From Podarcis muralis (Eukaryota): DNA of 64,000 bases. The notes beneath the pieces were generated by a model, which saw only the letters and a program-made list of their open reading frames with translations, was not told where the DNA came from and did no database searches. This document shows positions 5,901-35,370 of this stretch, piece after piece. The position numbers and the translations under genes are program-made. Location of the stretch: positions 38,068,001 to 38,132,000 of the forward strand of contig NC_135670.1 of the NCBI RefSeq assembly GCF_964188315.1, read 5' to 3'. How positions within the stretch are numbered: the stretch's first letter is position 1; each line of letters starts with the position of its first letter.

Positions 5901-8900
5901 TTTGTTTGTTCCTGTGTTACGTATTTTTGTGTTTTTACATTGTAAACTGCCCTGTGATCCTTGGATGAAAGGCAGTATAGAAATTAAATAAATACATAGT
6001 TACTTCCTTACTATAATCTGGAACCAGTTTTAAATAGCAGGGACCAGTGCTGGAACAAATTATGTGCTGGTAACAGTGAAAGAGGACTCTGCAGCATTTG
6101 CAAAGTTTGTATATCACTCTGTGCACCTCAGAAGACTCAGAGGATGTCTTTAGCACTTTTTCTGTCTCTCTCTTTAAAAAAAAAAAAAAAAAGCTAAGCC
6201 AGTCTTGTAAATAAGGCTATAGAAGTTACTAGCCTGCACCAAACAAAAAAGCAGCAGAGAGCTGACAGGAAGAGAATAAATAAATCAAGTTAATAATAAA
6301 TTTCTGTGCTGGTTGTAGAGGGATGATGGGCTCCTTCCTTCTTCTGCTAGCTGGCTCAGTAGCTTAAAGGTAAAGGTACCCCTGCCCGTACGGGCCAGTC
6401 GTGTCCGACTCTAGGGTTGTGCGCTCATCTCGCTTAAGAGGCCGGGGGCCAACGCTGTCCGAAGACACTTCCGGGTCACGTGGCCAGCGTGACGAAGCTG
6501 CTCTGGCGAGCCAGCACCAGCGCAGCACACGGAAACGCCGTTTACCTTCCCGCTATAAAGTGGTACCTATTTATCTACTTGCACTTAGGGGTGCTTTCAA
6601 ACTGCTAGGTGGGCAGGAGCTGGGACCGAATGACGGGAGCTCACCCCGCCGCGAGGATTCGAACCGCTGACCATGCGATCAGCAAGCCCTAGGCGCTGAG
6701 GTTTTACCCACAGCGCCACCAGCGTCCCAGTCGGCTCAGTAGCTTGCATGCATGCAATTCCTTATCACCCATGGCTACCAAGCAGTTGCTTGTAAACAAA
6801 GTTGTGCTAAGCATGATACCCAGGGCATACTCTAGTTTATTTCACTAGTTATTTTTTCTTTCTTTTTCCAACTGATATAACTATAGAAACAGTACAAATT
6901 ACATAATGCATATCTAGACATGTTAAACATTTCACTTTGAAATTATACAGAATAAGAAGCTATATTGTTGTGCTATCATACATATAACAGTAAAGTGCTA
7001 ATATGGATTATTTTTTACTGTTATGTATCTCTCAAAAATTAATCAAAGGACTCCACTGGATTATGACAGGAAGATACTCTAATTCTGTTTCTTGTGCTGC
7101 TTTTTCCAGGACTATTCCAAATGCAAAGATATCATGATTCAGCGAGGGAAGCTTTTCCTCGCTCGAACCTCCAATTCAAGGAGCAAAATTGCCGAACTTT
7201 GCCACACGTTTGTCAAAGATGGTGGGGTAAGAGAGCTTGGGTCATATTGGGGCAAAGAAGTAGAGTGAAATGTCTTGTGCGTATCCCACAGATGCTCCAT
7301 GTGTGTGCAGAAACTGATGCTGGGCAGAAAACATTGTATCCTATGAATCTCTGAGCTAAGCCAGGCATGGAATCATAGCATGGAAAAGACCTTGGAGGTC
7401 CTCCAGCCTTGCCTCCCACTCAGGGAAGCATCTGCAATGCAGGATGCAACTTTGCTATATACCGTATTTTTCGCTCTATAAGACGCACCAGACCATAAGT
7501 TTTTGGAGGAGGAAAACAAGAAAGAAAATATTCTGAATCCCAGAAGCCAGAACAGCAAGAGGGATCGCTGCGCAGTGAAAGCAGCAATCCCTCTCGCTGT
7601 TCTGGTTTCTGGGATAGCTGCGCAGCCTGCATTCGCTCCTTAAGACGCACACACGTTTCCCCTTACTTTTTAGGAGGGAAAAAGTGAGTCTTATAGAGCA
7701 AAAAATACGGTAACTAGCCAGACTAACTAACCATCCAGCCTCTGCTTTGAAACCTCCAACGAAGGAGAGAGTCCACCACCTCCTGAGGTTGTCTGTTCCG
7801 CCGTCAAACAGCTCTTAATGTCAGAAAGTTCTTGCATTGCAGGGGGTTGGACTAGATGATCTTTGGGGTCCCTTCCCACTCTACGATAATATGATTCTGT
7901 GACAGTGACTATTCACAGGGTTGGCGCCAGAGGCTGGGCATTTGCCAGGGCCCCAAGGCCAGAAGAGGGTCCACTGCCCTAGCATAAGCTGTTTTGTCAC
8001 AGAGCCCATTCCCAAGTTTTGCATCCATGGCTGATGGCCGTCTGTCCTGGATGCTTTAGTTGAGATTCCTGCGTTGCAGGGGTTTGGACTAGAAGGGACT
8101 AGAAGGTTGGAAGGGACCCTCAGGGTCCCTTCCAACCTCATGGATGTTAATATAGCCTGGACAGTGGATTTCCATGGCACGCAATAAACTGAAGAATCCT
8201 GTGCCTCCTTCTCCGCAGAGAATCTTAACTCACGCTTACTCCAAAGTGGTCCTGCGAGTGTTAGAAGCCGCCGTGGAAGCAAAGAAACGTTTCAGTGTCT
8301 ACATCACTGAATCACAGCCTGATCAAGCAGGGCAAGTAGATGGGACTTCTCTTTTCTTTATGTTAGGCGTACGAGGCTCTGTGCAAACAGAGGAAGCCGT
8401 TTGCTATCTGTCTTTATCTGAAAAGGTTTACCCCCCTGCGAATTTAGGGGGCAGTCTTCTGCACACTGAGCTTGGAAGTAAGTCCCATTGAACAGGGTGG
8501 GACATATTTCTGAACAAGCACACAGCAGATCAGTCTGCAAATTCAGCAGCTGGTAAATCACTTTGATTTAAGAGCGGCCCAAGAATCAATAGGTTTTGGT
8601 GAATGGATTTGCCAACCTTTTTTAGGTTGGGCTTTTGCCACATGCCCCATGTTTTAGATCCCCCTTTCCTCCCAGGAAATCAGAATAGTATACAAGGTTT
8701 TATTTCCTCCACTCCCCAGAATTTTCTGCCCACATCCGCCATGGGAGGTAAGGTAGGCTGAGAGATGGTGATTGGGTCATAGACCTCACAGTGAGCCACA
8801 TGGTAAGTGGAGATCTGAACCTGGGCCTCTGTGATTACAGTCCAACACTCTACCGTAGTCTTCCCCAACATGGTGCCCTCCAGGTGTTGGACTAAATTCC

Positions 8901-11900
8901 AATCTTTCCTAGCAATTGGAGGCTGATGGAAGTTGGAGTCCTACAACATCTAGGAGAACCACCTTGGGAAAGCCTGCTCTAACCACTACACAGCACTGCC
9001 TCTCTTCCACTTACTGTTCTGCATGAACCAGAGGATTGGGGGGTGGGGAAGAGCAACCTTGCTTCGTGCCAGGCTACAGTGAAGGGAAGAACTAGTGGGA
9101 AAGCAGCCAGAGGGCTTGAGGGAGGAGTCTGTTTCACTTTGTGGAAAGGTTTCTCTGCAAATCTCAAAAGACTTTTGGAAGGAGATGTCACCATTGGTGA
9201 CCAGGGGAATAAATCTGTGGAGCTCCATAGTTTTCTTAATCTCCAGCGGCACAATGTGAAGCATGTCACTTAGAAATAAATCCCCCTGAGTTCATTGGGA
9301 CCTGCTCTCTGTTAAATTTGTTTAGACCTGATTTCTTGAAACAACATCCTCAGTGCAAAAGGAGGGGTAGGAGTTGCTGATGATGAGAAGAAAAAACAAT
9401 TCTATACCAGGAGCTAATTTGATTTTTTATATATATATATATATATATATGCTTTCGTAGATTTTCACGGGTACAGGAATGCAGGTTTTGGTGTCCTCGG
9501 GTGTCTTCCCGTGTAAAAGTTGGGGTGTCTAGGCGACGTTTCGACGAGGTCTCACTCGTCATCTTCAGGCTGGTGCTTTCGGCTTCTTGTTACTGGAACA
9601 GAGCAGGATCTCAGTGTTTGAGTTCCTATAAATACTGTTGAGGAGGTGTGGCCTCTAATGTTCTTGGGCAGAGAGGAAGTTCCCAGGCTAGTGTGCCTTT
9701 TCTTCTTTTGTTTCTTAATTACTTGAGGGATATCTTGAGTGATTTCTTGAGTTGTATCCTGAGTACCACTTAGGTGGGTCATTAGGTGTGGATTAGTTGC
9801 TAAAGCCTTTGTGTCTTGACCTCTTGAACTTTGTGAAGAGTTTTTCTGGGAAGATGGTTGTACTGCATTTTGTTGTGCTCTGGCTTGGCTTCGTGTATAG
9901 GGGCGAGCTGTGGTTTTGTGGTCTGTGCCAGCCAGATCTGTGTAGGGATTGCAGGGGGGTGCAGCATCCGGAGGTGCCACCATGGTTTGGCTACTGGATG
10001 GTATCTGTAATTCATCTGTGGAGAGGGTCTGGGTTTGGGTCTGGTGTGGTTGATTGGGGATGGCGTTCTGTGTGCCTCTGGCTCTGGTGTCAGTTTTTGT
10101 GGGGAGGGCTAATTTCCAGATGTCTGGCAAGCGGGATGTGTCGTCACGCTTGTTCATGTTGTGAGGGTGTTTCTCTATCTCGATGGCTTCCATGATTATT
10201 CTCTTGTGGTGATGTTCCATGTTAACGAGCAATTTGGAATCTGCAAAATTAATTTCGTGTCCTGTTTCTTTCATGTGTTGGAAAAGAGAGGAAGTTTTTT
10301 CTTCTTTTTTGACGGCATTCTTGTGTTCTGCGATACGTGCATTTATTCGTCTGTTAGTTTGTCCAATGTACGTGGCTGGGCAGACTTTGCAGGGTATTTC
10401 ATAGACCCCTTGGTTTTCCAACTGGATTTTATCCTTGGGGTTTCTGAGGATATTGGCTATTTTTTGGTTGGTGCAAAAGGCTGTTTTGATATTGTGTTTA
10501 TGGAGGATTTTGCTAATTTTATCTGTAGTGCCCTTGATATAAGGAAGGAGGGCCATGCCATTGTTTTCTTCTGTGTCTTGGTTTTTGGGGGGTGTTTCTT
10601 TTTGGATTAGCTTCGTAACCCTGTTTTGCTGGTATCCATTGGCAATTAACACATTTGAGAGATTCTGTAACTCAGTTGTCAAGTGGTTTTGGTCAGCCAG
10701 GCGTTTGGTTCTGGAGATGAGAGTCTTGGCTACGGAGTTTATTTGTGCAGGGTGGTGGTGTGATTGTGCATGTAAGTAGCGGTTGGTGTGTGTTTTTTTC
10801 CGGTAGATAGTGTGTCCTAGGGAGCCATCAGGTTTTTTGTAGATTAGGACGTCAAGGAAGGGAAGTTGGTTGTTGGCTTCTATTTCCATAGTGAATTGTA
10901 TTTTGGGGTGTAGGCTGTTGAGATGTGTGAGGAAGCTATCCAGTTTTTCCTTCCCGTGTGGCCAAATTACAAAGGTGTCGTCAACATATCTGAGCCAAAG
11001 TTTGGGTTTGTGTTCTGACTTGTCTAAGGCATTGGTTTCAAAGTGTTCCATGTACAGGTTTGCGATGACCGGTGAGAGGGGTGATCCCATAGGTGCTCCT
11101 TCTATCTGTTTGTATCTTTGTCCATTGTGGATGAAGTACGTGTTGGTTAGGCAGTGCTTGGTCAGGTCCAAGATGTATTCGGGGGGATTGTATTTGTTTT
11201 GAATGGCTATCAAGGCTTCATTAATGGGCACTTGTGTGAAGAGAGATACAACATCGAAGCTCACAAGTAGGTCATTGGGATGTAGGTTTTGCTTCTTTAT
11301 TGTTTCTATGAACTGGAAGGAGTTTGGAACGTGTGAAGAGATGGATTCTGCATAGGGCTGAAGTTGCTTGGCGAGAAATTTAGCGAGATTTTGTAGAGGT
11401 GAGCCTATGGAGCTGACTATTGGTCTGAGTGGTGTTCCTTCTTTGTGTATCTTGGGGAGGCCGTAGAGTTTGGGGCATCTGGATGATTTTTCTCTGGGGA
11501 TGATTCTTAGCTGGATTTCTTCACTGATAGGAGAGGCTTTTATTTTGGATTTGGTGGTTTTTTCCAGATAGGTGGTGGGATCTGTTTTTATAGGTTGGTA
11601 GGTAGGGTCTTGGAGTAGATTTGATAGTTTTGCTTGGTAGTCCGATGTGTTCATCACAACAGTGGCATTACCTTTGTCTGCTGGGAGAATGGTTATGTTG
11701 TTGTCTTTCCTCAGGTCGGTGAGTGCTTTCTGTTCTTCTTTGTGTAAATTGCTTCTGGGTGGTTTGCTGGAGCAGAGGATGTTGGTGACTTCAAGTCTGA
11801 TTTTATTGGCTTCATCTGGGTTGATTTTGGTTAGGCTAGCTTCGACTCCGCATATGATGTTTTCCGTGGGGATGCGTCTCGGGGCGACTGCAAAGTTGAA

Positions 11901-12922
11901 ACCTTTGGAGAGTACTTTGGTTTCAGTTGAGGTGAGGATCCTGTCTGATATGTTATGTACTGTTTGCTTCATGGGTTGTTGTGGAGGGTGGCTGGGTTTC
12001 TGGCGTTTTTCTAGTTTGTGGAGTTTGTTGGTGTGTGTGTCTGTCTTACGTGAGGTCTCCGTTTCAGCTCTCCAGACGGCTAGTTGTTTGCATTTGTCCC
12101 AGAGTGCAGGGTGGATTTTGTTACAGAGTTTGAGGTGAAGAGTGAGCAGATCTTTGTTGGTTTGGTTTAGTAGGTATCTTTTCCTGTGTAGTTCGTTTCT
12201 GATTAGGGATAGTTCAGTTCGTTTCAGGATCCTTTCGGTAGCTGGGGTTTTAGAGTGGAATTTAAGTTGGAAGCATGTGGGAATTAAGTTGTTGTCTCGG
12301 CAGTTGCGTAGGAACAAGAGATCACATAAGATGGTGGCTCTTCGGATTTCTAGTTTCTCGTAGGTTCTTGTCAGCTGGAAGGTTTCCTCCCCGTAGAGGT
12401 GAGATATTTGCTTTCGTAGATTTTCACGGGTACAGGAATGCAGGTTTTGGTGTCCTCGGGTGTCTTCCCGTGTAAAAGTTGGGGTGTCTAGGCGACGTTT
12501 CGACGAGGTCTCACTCGTCATCTTCAGGCTGGTGCTTTCGGCTTCTTGTTACTGGAACAGAGCAGGATCTCAGTGTTTGAGTTCCTATAAATACTGTTGA
12601 GGAGGTGTGGCCTCTAATGTTCTTGGGCAGAGAGGAAGTTCCCAGGCTAGTGTGCCTTTTCTTCTTTTGTTTCTTAATTACTTGAGGGATATCTTGAGTG
12701 ATTTCTTGAGTTGTATCCTGAGTACCACTTAGGTGGGTCATTAGGTGTGGATTAGTTGCTAAAGCCTTTGTGTCTTGACCTCTTGAACTTTGTGAAGAGT
12801 TTTTCTGGGAAGATGGTTGTACTGCATTTTGTTGTGCTCTGGCTTGGCTTCGTGTATAGGGGCGAGCTGTGGCCTAGACACCCCAACTTTTACACGGGAA
12901 GACACCCGAGGACACCAAAACC

Positions 12923-12963
<41 letters not shown>

Positions 12964-13485
12964 TGTTAATTTTTAGAACACTGTTTTGAACAAAAAAACT
13001 ATTAATTTTAAAAAACTGTTAACAATTACACAGGCAGAAGATGGCAAAGGCACTCAGTAAACTTGGCATTCCTGTGACCATCATCCTGGATGCTGCCGTT
13101 GGGTAAGTCTGTGTGGCTGGTGCTGCAGCTGGGCTTTGGAAAGGCAGCTGGACATAGTGACCTGCTGTGAGGGCTGCATTGGAAGAGGACCGGCTGCATC
13201 CTGGTGTTTAAAGGGCTGGTTCTTGCACTGGTAAGCCAAGGTTGTTGGCCATAGCGCAGTGCGAGAGCGTTTGCCTTGGGTGCAGAAGGTCCAAGGTTCA
13301 GTCCCCAGAGATTCCAGGTGGGGGTTGGAGAGCTGCTGCCAGCCTGTGTAGACAGTACTGGGCTAGATGGACCACTGGTGGGACTCGCTATAAGGCAGCT
13401 TCCTGTGTCCCCCTCCTTTCTCTTTGGCTGTTTCATGGCTAGTCTTGTGTTTCTCTCCCAAGTGTAAAACAAGTGGCAAGGGGAA

Positions 13486-13539
<54 letters not shown>

Positions 13540-16500
13540 TTTTATTTATATCCCGCCCTCCCCAGCCGAAGCCGGGCTCAGGGCGGCTAACAACAAAATA
13601 GTACAACATACCAAAATCATTCATTACAAAATTAACTCAAATCAAACCAATGGCAGCCACTGGGCCAGAGCTCCACGAAGATTGCCGAAGGAGGGGGTCA
13701 GGCTGCGCCCTGGCCAAAGGCCTGGTGGAACATCTCTGTCTTGCAGGCCCTGCGGAAAGATGTCAAGTCCCACAGGGCCCTAGTCTCTTGTGGCAGAGCG
13801 TTCCACCAGATCGGGGCCACAGCCGAAAAAGCCCTGGCTCTAGTTGAGGCCAGCCTAACTCCTCTGTGGCCTGGGACCTTCAAGATGTTTTTATTTGAAG
13901 ACCATAAGTTCCTCTGTGGGACATACCAGGAGAGGCGGTCCCGTAGGTACAAGCGTCCTAGGCTATATAGGGCTTTAAAGGTTAAAACCAGCACCTTAAA
14001 CCTGATCCTGTACTCCACCGGGAGCCAGTGCAGCTGGTATAGCACCGGGTGAATGTGATCTCGCAGCGAGGACCCCGTAAGGTATAGCTGAAAGCGTAAC
14101 AGGAGTGGGCTCTGTGCATCACACTGGCCCCACCCCAAATAACTCCTTGGATGGAACAGGAATTGAGTTGTTTTTATTCCTTCTGAACAGCTACATCATG
14201 GAGAAAGTGGACCTGGTGATAGTTGGCGCTGAAGGAGTGGTAGAAAATGGAGGAATTATTAACAAGGTAAAGTGTGCGTCTGCCCAGGTTTTTTGTGGCT
14301 CCCTAAATAGTTGTTTTTCCAGAGCTGTCCTGCTGGATCTGAACCAAAGTCCCGTCTTCTCCAGCGTCCTGCTTTCTTCCATTGGTTAGCCAGATTATTT
14401 AAGGAAGAAGCTCGGGAGCAGCAGAAGAAAGTGCTTGTCGTTCCCTAGTTTTTTTCCCTCCAACACACACGAAAAAAGACTTTAAAAATCCTAGTCAGCT
14501 TTCCTTTGTAAAAACTTGCTTGATTCCATTCCCTCTCTTTCTTCCCAACTGTCCCAAATAAATGTTAGAATTCTGCAGCCTGTATATATTGTTCAAAATA
14601 AACAAGCAGCATTGCCTATTTACTTATATGGGGCATAATTGTATATAATTTATTCTAATTTTGCTAGTCAAGGGGAGCAGCATAAAACTACATAGAGTGG
14701 AAGTGTTGACCAGTGGAAAACTTGTTTAGCTGCTCCTCTGTCATCTGAGCAGAAACTGTGTATGTTCCTTATGAGTGGAAACTGCGTTCTTTACAACCAT
14801 AAGGGCCAGAAAATAAAATAGAATAGAAAGCTAGAATGTGGACCCACACGCCCATGTACATATGAATGTTCTGGCTTCTGTGGAATCCTATCATACATGC
14901 ATAGTATAAGGCTTGCTTATATGTGAGTGTAATGGGGATTAGGGTTGCTTGTGCGTAAATTCCAAACTGCTCCGAGCTGGTAGTCTAGCTCAGTGTTTCC
15001 CAACCGGTGTTCCGCGGCACACGAGTGTGCCGCGGAACGTTGCCTTGTGTTCCGTGGGAGGGAGGCGGGGGGCGGGGCGGCGGCGGGCGCGCGCGGGGCG
15101 GCGGGCGGGCTCCCTCCCGCATCCCATCGCCGCTCGCTTCGGCCGGCCTACTGGAGCGAGCGGCGATGGGATGTGGGGGGGGGCTCGCTCGCCGCCCCGC
15201 GTGTGCGCGCCGCCGCGCCCCGCCTCTTGCCGCCCGAGTCCCCGCCTCCCTCCCACGGCACACCAGCCTACCTCCGTGTGCCTTTGCCCAAAAAAGGTTG
15301 GGAAACACTGGTCTAGCTGGACCTTTCCCCGGTTTTGACAGCCATAAAACGCGGCTGTCTCAATCACTGGCAGAATCCGTCAGTGGGCGTTTCCTAAACT
15401 TCCTCCAACATAAGAATTCCTTAACAGACAACCTCCTCCTCGCCTCTCTGCGCAGAAGCCTTCTGCGCAGAGTGGGCGTGCCAAGCGGTGGTCCTGCACT
15501 CACCTCACTGGAAGAGTCTCGGAGCCTCCCCTCCAAAGTACTCTCAGCCTCTCCTTTCTTCCTGGTGTCACCTTGGCTTCCTTCCCCAGCGGAAGCTCTC
15601 TCTCTCTCCTTGCTGGTTCCCTCTCCGGCATCATGAGGGAGCCTAACCTCTCCACTCAGCTCCGATGTCAGTTCCCTGACAGTGAGCATACCCTTTTTCT
15701 CAAAGGTTTTGAGACCTGAATCAAGGGAGTTGCTTATTTTTCTTGCAGGTATAATACAGGATACAGTTAAGCGCTTTGAAGTTCCACTGATTTTCAGTGA
15801 GAGAGGGAAACATGTACTTTATAGCACAAACCTAGGCATGTCAACTCAGGAGGAAATCCCTTTACTTCACAGTAGCTTAGTAGGTATAAAATTGTAGCTT
15901 ACTTACATGGGAACCTGATTAAACTCAATGGGGTTTTCTTCTGAGTAGACATGTATATAGGACTGCACTCTAAATGTCTCCAACAAGACTTCACTGTGCT
16001 CGGCTTTGACAGAATCTTACGTTTGGGGTTTCTTTTGTTCTTTTGTATCATAAAGCAAGGGCTGTTTGGTTCCTCATCATAACCTGAGAACATTTCTCTC
16101 TCCCCCCCCCCCATGGCCTTTTCAGATTGGCACAAATCAAATGGCTGTGTGCGCCAAAGCTCAGAACAAGCCCTTCTACGTGGTGGCAGAGAGCTTCAAG
16201 TTTGTGAGACTCTTCCCTCTGAACCAACAGGATGTCCCAGATAAATTTAAGGTAAAGGAAAACTAACTTTGCTTCCTGGTTATCTGCATTCAAAACTCTG
16301 TAGCCTGCAATGGGGTGGAAACCTCTGAGGAATTTAATGTCCGATCTTGGTACAGTGGTGCCTCACAAGACGAAATTAATCCGTTCCGCGAGTCTCTTCG
16401 TCTTGTGGTTTTTTCGTCTTGCGAAGCAACCCTATTAGCGGCTTAGCGGCTATTAATGCCTTTAAGAAAAAGGAAACAAACTCGCAAGAACTCGCAAGCA

Positions 16501-19817: not shown

Positions 19818-35370
<15,553 letters not shown>

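Follow-up and report, generated by a model that had tools for sequence, protein, structure and literature searches.

Hammerhead ribozymes (HHRs) are known from Penelope-like elements (PLEs) as minimal versions that have a long helix II and a short helix I, with one base left unpaired ahead of stem II and no helix III; they occur once in each pseudo-long terminal repeat (pLTR), need a dimer to act and cleave poorly in vitro, and the version from D. virilis Penelope has a helix I of only 2 bp (PMC4209133). That the pLTR contains the first codons of the open reading frame (ORF) was pointed out in 2013 (PMC3846280). For PAc, the Poseidon-type PLE of Anolis carolinensis, the start codon has already been described as lying within the HHR (Frangieh 2024, PMC11167929). 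The PAc HHR cuts only when the protein of the element is added, its HHR-dead mutants insert normally in vitro, and unprocessed RNA is the main substrate; the "tail" found on one side of the insertions is explained by reverse transcription starting at two internal sites, about 111–118 nt into the ORF (PMC11167929). The role of the HHR in PLEs is still open. Here, we analyze a PLE found in a 64,000-nt stretch of the genome of the lizard Podarcis muralis (GCF_964188315.1, contig NC_135670.1, positions 38,068,001 to 38,132,000; hereinafter the window), in which a start codon within the ribozyme core, a ribozyme that covaries across families and an ORF that runs into the next ribozyme bear on that role.

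The ORF of this element (9552..12521, minus strand; 989 aa, 2970 nt with the stop), recovered by an ORF finder as a single frame, begins inside the upstream minimal HHR (12494..12527, minus strand, C3 to C17), which consists of a CUGAAGA core, a bulged U, a 6-bp helix II, the loop UGAGAC, GAAAC and GUC. An identical downstream HHR lies at 9535..9568 on the same strand, and the 34-nt string that defines both, CTGAAGA-T-GACGAG-tgagac-CTCGTC-GAAAC-GTC, occurs exactly twice in the window, with 0 occurrences expected by chance. The start codon (12519..12521, minus strand) is formed by A9, the bulged U and G10.1, and the core A6 occupies position -3; that the core supplies the ATG, with an A at -3, had been stated in the original prediction, which was made from the sequence of this stretch. 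The predicted upstream cut falls at 12494/12493 (C17 being 12494), 25 nt after the ATG codon, and the downstream one at 9535/9534. The frame is closed by a TAA 10 codons before the ATG, which makes an N-terminal extension impossible, and the next in-frame methionine is residue 184, downstream of the conserved N-terminal LYGE motif. The earlier claim that the cut would remove the AUG and leave no other methionine before residue 184 is thus borne out, and the sequence statements made alongside it (the ORF, its 2970 nt versus a 2959-nt unit, the twofold motif, the cut site and residue 184) are right to the base.

We then asked how far the core AUG extends, using regex scans of the loci of related families. 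Among the 11 families with readable loci, to which the count applies rather than to all PLEs, the AUG lies within the HHR core in 10; many other gene models begin about 12 residues before the LYGE motif or are truncated. The conservation of AUG and core that the original prediction had proposed to check is found in these 10 families. Nine have a U at the bulge and hence an A9-U-G10.1 start, with one of them (L006) bearing a U at both the bulge and N7. The tenth, from a bee (L013), has an A at the bulge and a U at N7, which gives an A6-U7-G8 start in the same frame. N7 and the bulge are the two unconstrained positions of the core stretch. The exception is a moth locus (L011) with a degenerate 5′ core, of which only the 3′ half (GAAACGUU) is recognizable and whose start lies 95 nt past the cut. 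One further locus (L004, protein P0002) was left out, its contig beginning 25 nt before the ATG with neither a repeat nor an HHR. At the protein level, an N-terminal signature (ETS or KR at residues 8–10) is present in 8 of the 51 homologs that reach the LYGE motif. The core AUG, with a spread over diverged families that takes in lizards, beetles and a bee, is a clade-wide feature, with a U apparently fixed by selection at one of the two free positions. This suggests a start codon under selection inside a ribozyme that is itself under selection.

That the ribozyme is genuine is indicated by covariation. An Rfam scan of 8500–14000 at E-values up to 10 returned no hammerhead family match and only microsatellite noise, which is expected because the motif has no helix III. 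We obtained the DNA of relatives via their proteins and aligned the HHR motif from nine families, the proteins of which are 41–51% identical to that of the window element. A covariance model (R1) built from eight other PLE families, with the window element excluded, picks out both copies (35.4 bits, E 3.7e-6) as its sole matches in the window; the hammerhead search with Infernal that had been suggested thus fails with the Rfam models and succeeds with a PLE-specific one. Across the nine families, pairing in helix II amounts to 94% and five of its six pairs have changed in a compensatory way, covariation is also seen in helix I for its first three pairs, and C3-G8 alternates with U3-A8 in a 5:4 ratio of families, the mixed combinations never being seen. 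The covariation score is 0.79 as against 0.12–0.15 for slid partners, and no shuffle reaches 0.79. The CUGANGA ... GAAA core of hammerheads, cut after NUH, is found twice here as CUGAAGA ... GAAAC GUC, helix III is replaced by GAAACGUC, which is invariant in the nine families and in which ACGU is self-complementary without a loop, and at helix II's 5′ end all families read have a bulged base. Cofolding yields a dimer via contacts other than an ACGU helix III, a thermodynamic prediction that says nothing on the dimer model. The motif is, as had been claimed, a real minimal HHR of the PLE type, with its activity being predicted.

Two further observations concern the ribozymes themselves. The families L002, L003, L007 and L010 carry UUGANAA in place of CUGANGA; here C3U and G8A occur together as a natural double change, and positions 3 and 8 still pair. 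The window also contains a non-coding HHR mini-element with copies at 34325–34350 and 34953–34978 on the plus strand, 628 nt apart; its motif, CTGAAGA-A-GTGTGC..GCACAC-GAAA-GCTC, has an A at both the bulge and N7 and so is without a core AUG, and it is not detected by R1 at E-values up to 1.

At its other end, the ORF runs 11 nt beyond the 2959-nt unit and stops inside the downstream ribozyme. Because 2959 = 3 x 986 + 1, the frame enters the downstream HHR shifted by one and reads it as CCT GAA GAT GAC GAG TGA (PEDDE and stop), with the UGA (9552..9554, minus strand) being the first three bases of loop II. Since this stop lies on the 5′ side of the downstream cut, the ORF is preserved as long as the upstream HHR remains uncut. 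Of the proposal that only tandem RNA or a circle could give the protein, what holds is the need for an uncut upstream HHR; no special RNA is called for, an ordinary pLTR-ORF-pLTR transcript being sufficient. Measured as ORF length minus unit length, relative to the A of the next HHR AUG, the stop lies at +11 in the window element, at +74 in L002 and at +32 in L006, where it is a UGA directly after the cut. In L007 and L009 it is the core U4-G5-A6 and ends 2 nt before the next AUG, in L011 it is a UAG spanning the cut, and in the others it is found at -102 (L013), -108 (L008), -127 (L005, Anolis), -134 (L003) and -284 (L010). The ORF reaches the next HHR in 6 of the 11 families and is longer than the unit in three. 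The predicted stop position is not conserved, being the first stop met by the incoming frame. Hence, of the claim that one ribozyme encodes both start and stop, the start stands, whereas the stop in loop II is correct for this element and is not a conserved ribozyme feature: the HHR does not "encode" the stop, except where the frame meets the obligatory core UGA. In the Henosepilachna beetle family (L009), the ORF from the HHR AUG is 2607 nt long and has such a core UGA stop with the next AUG 2 nt on (C-UGA-AG-AUG), making the unit coding nearly end to end.

Two of these loci show arrangements that may be recorded here. The beetle locus (L009:21-8293) is a tandem array of at least three units of ~2609 nt, and a Logan contig of L003 (run SRR21069060) has a 30-nt perfect terminal overlap (1–30 and 2757–2786) that closes it to a 2756-nt unit, which points to a circular molecule or to the collapse of a tandem array.

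The single ORF codes for a reverse transcriptase (RT) followed by a C-terminal GIY-YIG endonuclease, as expected for the Penelope/Poseidon clade. The RT domain comprises residues 358–536 (10914..11450, minus strand; Pfam RVT_1, E 3.1e-15), and the GIY-YIG core residues 705–744 (10290..10409, minus strand), with a CxxC inside the motif; the latter scores 19.4 bits in Pfam, below the 22.6-bit cutoff, and was identified by reading the motif directly. The PLE domain set PF00078/PF28514/PF26215 is common to 1547 homologs. A CX2-5CxxC linker upstream of the GIY-YIG domain marks the Neptune and Nematis elements. By direct reading, the 50 residues before the GIY-YIG domain of the window element hold only one cysteine and therefore no such linker, which agrees with the Penelope/Poseidon assignment. 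Among protein matches, a gene model from Podarcis muralis comes first (97% identity), with the Anolis PAc-type protein at 45%.

Self-BLAST, a repeat finder and reading of the sequence together delimit one PLE insertion at 9451..12927 on the minus strand, within a (TA)n tract of which 12928..12960 flank the 5′ side of the element and 9429..9450 its 3′ side, both delimited by sequence reading; (TA)n targets are known for PLEs (PMC8557442). The insertion is composed of a 56-nt inverted piece, a 5′-truncated upstream pLTR, a full unit and a downstream pLTR that ends at ORF nt 112 of the next unit. The upstream pLTR (12410..12872, minus strand; self-BLAST, repeat finder) is a partial tandem copy from about codon 870 of the ORF. 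The two pLTR copies (9451–9913 and 12410–12872) are 463 nt long, offset by the unit length of 2959 nt, and 100% identical, with the lone BLAST mismatch belonging to the TA flank; because they are identical, the insertion must be very young. The inverted piece (12872..12927, plus strand; inverted repeats I1/I2, 98%) is the reverse complement of ORF nt 29–84. It begins with the first base past the predicted HHR cut, ends at the inner RT-initiation site and joins the direct copy at 12872/12871 with 1 nt of microhomology. The 28-nt tail (9451..9478, minus strand) corresponds to ORF nt 85–112 of the next unit and is present on the direct copy without a counterpart in the inverted piece. Hallmarks of PLEs are partial-tandem pLTRs and, in many cases, an inverted 5′ fragment together with a tail of 30–40 bp on one end, and these features are found here; the element is a very recent, intact retroelement of the Penelope/Poseidon clade in a lacertid lizard genome.

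A second locus (L001, 4388–9048; Podarcis muralis chromosome OZ076968.1), likewise in a (TA)n tract, holds a head-to-head pair of 5′-truncated copies of the same family that are 98% identical to the window element, and its arms end at ORF nt 112 and nt 84, the same pair of ends as in the window element. The inversion junction is at about ORF nt 730 in L001 and 38 nt past the cut in L006, so that the junction exactly at the cut in the window element is a single case that is repeated in neither of them. The 735-aa "gene" annotated at L001 is a chimeric model built on the insertion. L001 also speaks against a candidate intron in the pLTR (GT 12681 to a polypyrimidine-AG at 12553, 130 nt, and likewise 9594–9722, minus strand), whose splicing in the downstream copy would bring the ORF to a close with DIPQ and a stop: its donor is GC in both L001 copies (ORF nt 2800).

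Taking these observations together, we consider it probable that this recent, intact PLE, with its clade-wide core AUG, uses an ordinary uncut more-than-unit RNA as both mRNA and template, with cutting being a side reaction. Transcription would begin in the upstream partial copy, and its ordinary more-than-unit product, with the upstream HHR uncut, would be the mRNA; the downstream HHR might be cut without harm to the ORF. The same uncut RNA would be the template, on which reverse transcription would begin in the downstream copy, at ORF nt 84 or 112. As the 3.4-kb direct copy spans two intact hammerheads, the template of the direct copy was uncut at both. Cutting would need a dimer or the element's own protein, by which it might possibly be triggered; it would take the AUG off any cut RNA and, at the downstream copy, sever the priming site, and because of these two losses we read it as a processing or limiting side reaction rather than a template-making step. 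The 56-nt inverted piece fits a trace of run-off reverse transcription on ribozyme-cleaved RNA, in a single case. Some points weigh against the overall picture: helix I has only 2 contiguous base pairs in the window element, as the original prediction had cautioned, versus 3–5 bp in relatives; the family comparison draws on one or two copies from each family and is uncorrected for shared ancestry; the ORF ends 100–280 nt before the next HHR in 5 of the 11 families, so that reaching the HHR is not required; and the extension of the C-terminal tail may be tolerated read-through rather than functional, its substitutions being near neutral.

An alternative, and the form in which the original prediction had cast the matter, is that self-cleavage may switch the RNA between messenger and template. 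Spelled out, uncut RNA would be the messenger, the protein would trigger the ribozyme, and the cut RNA would become the RT template. The protein dependence of cutting in PAc (PMC11167929) and the removal of the AUG by the cut are both in keeping with it, and the inverted 56-nt piece, which ends at the predicted cut, points to cleaved RNA having been reverse transcribed at least once. However, that RNA gave only 56 nt, whereas the 3.4-kb direct copy spans two uncut HHRs. RT also starts 56–84 nt 3′ of the cut, so that downstream cutting would detach the priming site, and RNA cut at the upstream HHR would give rise to copies with neither AUG nor promoter. With the normal insertion of PAc HHR mutants and unprocessed RNA as the main substrate (PMC11167929), the claim of a switch fails for the closest system studied, and we regard it as unlikely here.

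The ORF overrun might alternatively be a coincidence, with the last ~95 codons and the loop II stop being functionless read-through and the protein needing only the part up to the first TRSQ motif. The region in question is a fast-evolving C-terminal tail (about residues 800–989; 9555..10124, minus strand) with two (Y/V)TRS(Q/R) motifs that stays open through the whole downstream pLTR. Its substitutions are about 13 non-synonymous to 4 synonymous, which is near neutral and speaks for this explanation, as compared with about 10 to 7 in the RT-endonuclease part; moreover, the stop position differs in every family, with L003, PAc and similar relatives stopping well short of the next HHR, and the element strand is poor in T (18%) and G (15%) and might on that account lack stops. 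Against these stand the last 95 codons, with 0 in-frame stops versus 8 and 6 in the other frames, and the last 189 codons, with 0 versus 9 and 9 (P about 5e-4 from composition). Likewise, a diverged copy at L001 (L001b), with about 2% of its bases different, keeps 748 codons open to the same PEDDE end, its frame being restored by a -1/+7 indel pair (net +6). The ORF has also been carried into or across the next HHR independently in 6 of the 11 families. Finally, a (V/I/M)TRS(Q/R/M) or LRPR motif is found 10–25 residues from the C-terminus in many PLE proteins of the clade via different codons, such a basic motif being seen in P0003, P0006-P0008, P0011, P0014, P0026, P0044 and P0061; the window element has it twice (at about residues 892 and 977), and the second copy (VTRSR), 11 residues from the stop, argues against a functionless end. 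On the evidence of the reading frames, the tail is kept open and its sequence is weakly constrained, and we think it quite unlikely that the overrun is no more than a coincidence.

The geometry of the element is also compatible with a translated circle, in which the HHRs would cut out the 2959-nt unit, a host ligase would close it and ribosomes would read it for one lap plus 11 nt, the permuted ORF with its AUG 28 nt before the cut being an adaptation to a circular messenger. With an ORF longer than the unit and an AUG 5′ of the cut, the protein is encoded only by a circle or by uncut RNA; none of the three through-reading families measured has a unit length divisible by three, so that translation of a circle would terminate; the ACGU palindrome found instead of helix III could let both ends of a single unit pair with each other; and HHR-delimited circles are known for retrozymes (PMC7229834) and were proposed in 2014 as more-than-unit templates for PLEs (PMC4209133). 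Yet such a messenger is very improbable, as autonomous PLEs are not known to form circles, no reads of PAc RNA-seq begin or end at the cut (PMC11167929), the minimal HHRs cleave poorly in vitro (PMC4209133), initiation would have to be cap-independent, the ORF is shorter than the unit in 5 of the 11 families, and an ordinary linear transcript explains everything observed.

Returning to the uncut linear RNA as messenger and template, the core AUG, the covariation and the ORF-into-HHR layout together speak for a deliberate overlap between the start of translation and the folding of the ribozyme. If so, cutting and translating one and the same RNA would be mutually exclusive, which would set limits on models that invoke unit-length cut RNAs as messengers or templates. 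The six families in which the ORF runs into or across the next ribozyme have almost no non-coding spacer. Were the circle nonetheless true, a full RT-endonuclease would be read from a ribozyme-made circular RNA, and autonomous PLEs would be the coding relatives of retrozymes and viroid-like circles.

Several ribozyme-bearing systems provide points of comparison. Self-cleaving ribozymes at the translation start are also known elsewhere: hepatitis delta virus (HDV)-like ones occupy the 5′ end in R2 and L1Tc, and others lie beside the start codons of RNA mycoviruses (PMC6765202; PMC13725137). However, these cut upstream of the AUG, with the R2-type then staying on the mRNA, whereas the cut in the window element, being 25 nt downstream of the AUG, would destroy a messenger rather than create one. 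Retrozymes, which are related to PLE pLTRs and coexist with PLEs, resemble the element in having a unit between two type I hammerheads (PMC7229834; bioRxiv 10.64898/2026.07.22.740005). In contrast to the window element, with its unit of 2959 nt that is essentially all coding, they are 170–1000 nt long and non-coding, and their circles have been demonstrated; by the criterion of a small non-coding unit, the element is not a retrozyme. The minimal HHRs described by Cervera and de la Pena in 2014 (PMC4209133) show the same helix pattern with one ribozyme per pLTR. That study links neither the unpaired base nor N7 to a start codon, the terms start codon, AUG and stop codon being absent from its text, and it does not treat where the ORF ends relative to the ribozyme.

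The closest system is PAc, the published layout of which is also found in the Anolis locus that we fetched (L005). The window element shares with it an AUG that opens stem II (A9-U-G10.1) and is preceded by C3 and G8, a cut 25–26 nt after the start codon, the absence of helix III (GAAACGUC), AT-rich targets and partial-tandem pLTRs; likewise, the ends at ORF nt 112 and 84, both of this insertion and of L001, agree with the sites at which reverse transcription begins in PAc (about ORF nt 84 and 112). They differ in that the proteins are 45% identical, the helix I of 2 bp contrasts with one of 3 bp in PAc, and the window element carries about 150 C-terminal residues beyond the Anolis protein. 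Further, the 2511-nt ORF of the Anolis locus ends 127 nt before the next AUG of its 2638-nt unit, as opposed to the 11-nt overrun seen here. Thus, what was already published for Anolis PAc is the start codon in the ribozyme, and what is added here is its presence in 10 of the 11 families with two alternative placements of the AUG. The overrun of the unit by the ORF and the recurrent ORF-into-ribozyme layout are undescribed additions within the known system, and the result as a whole is a generalization and a layout variant of that system rather than a new kind of system.

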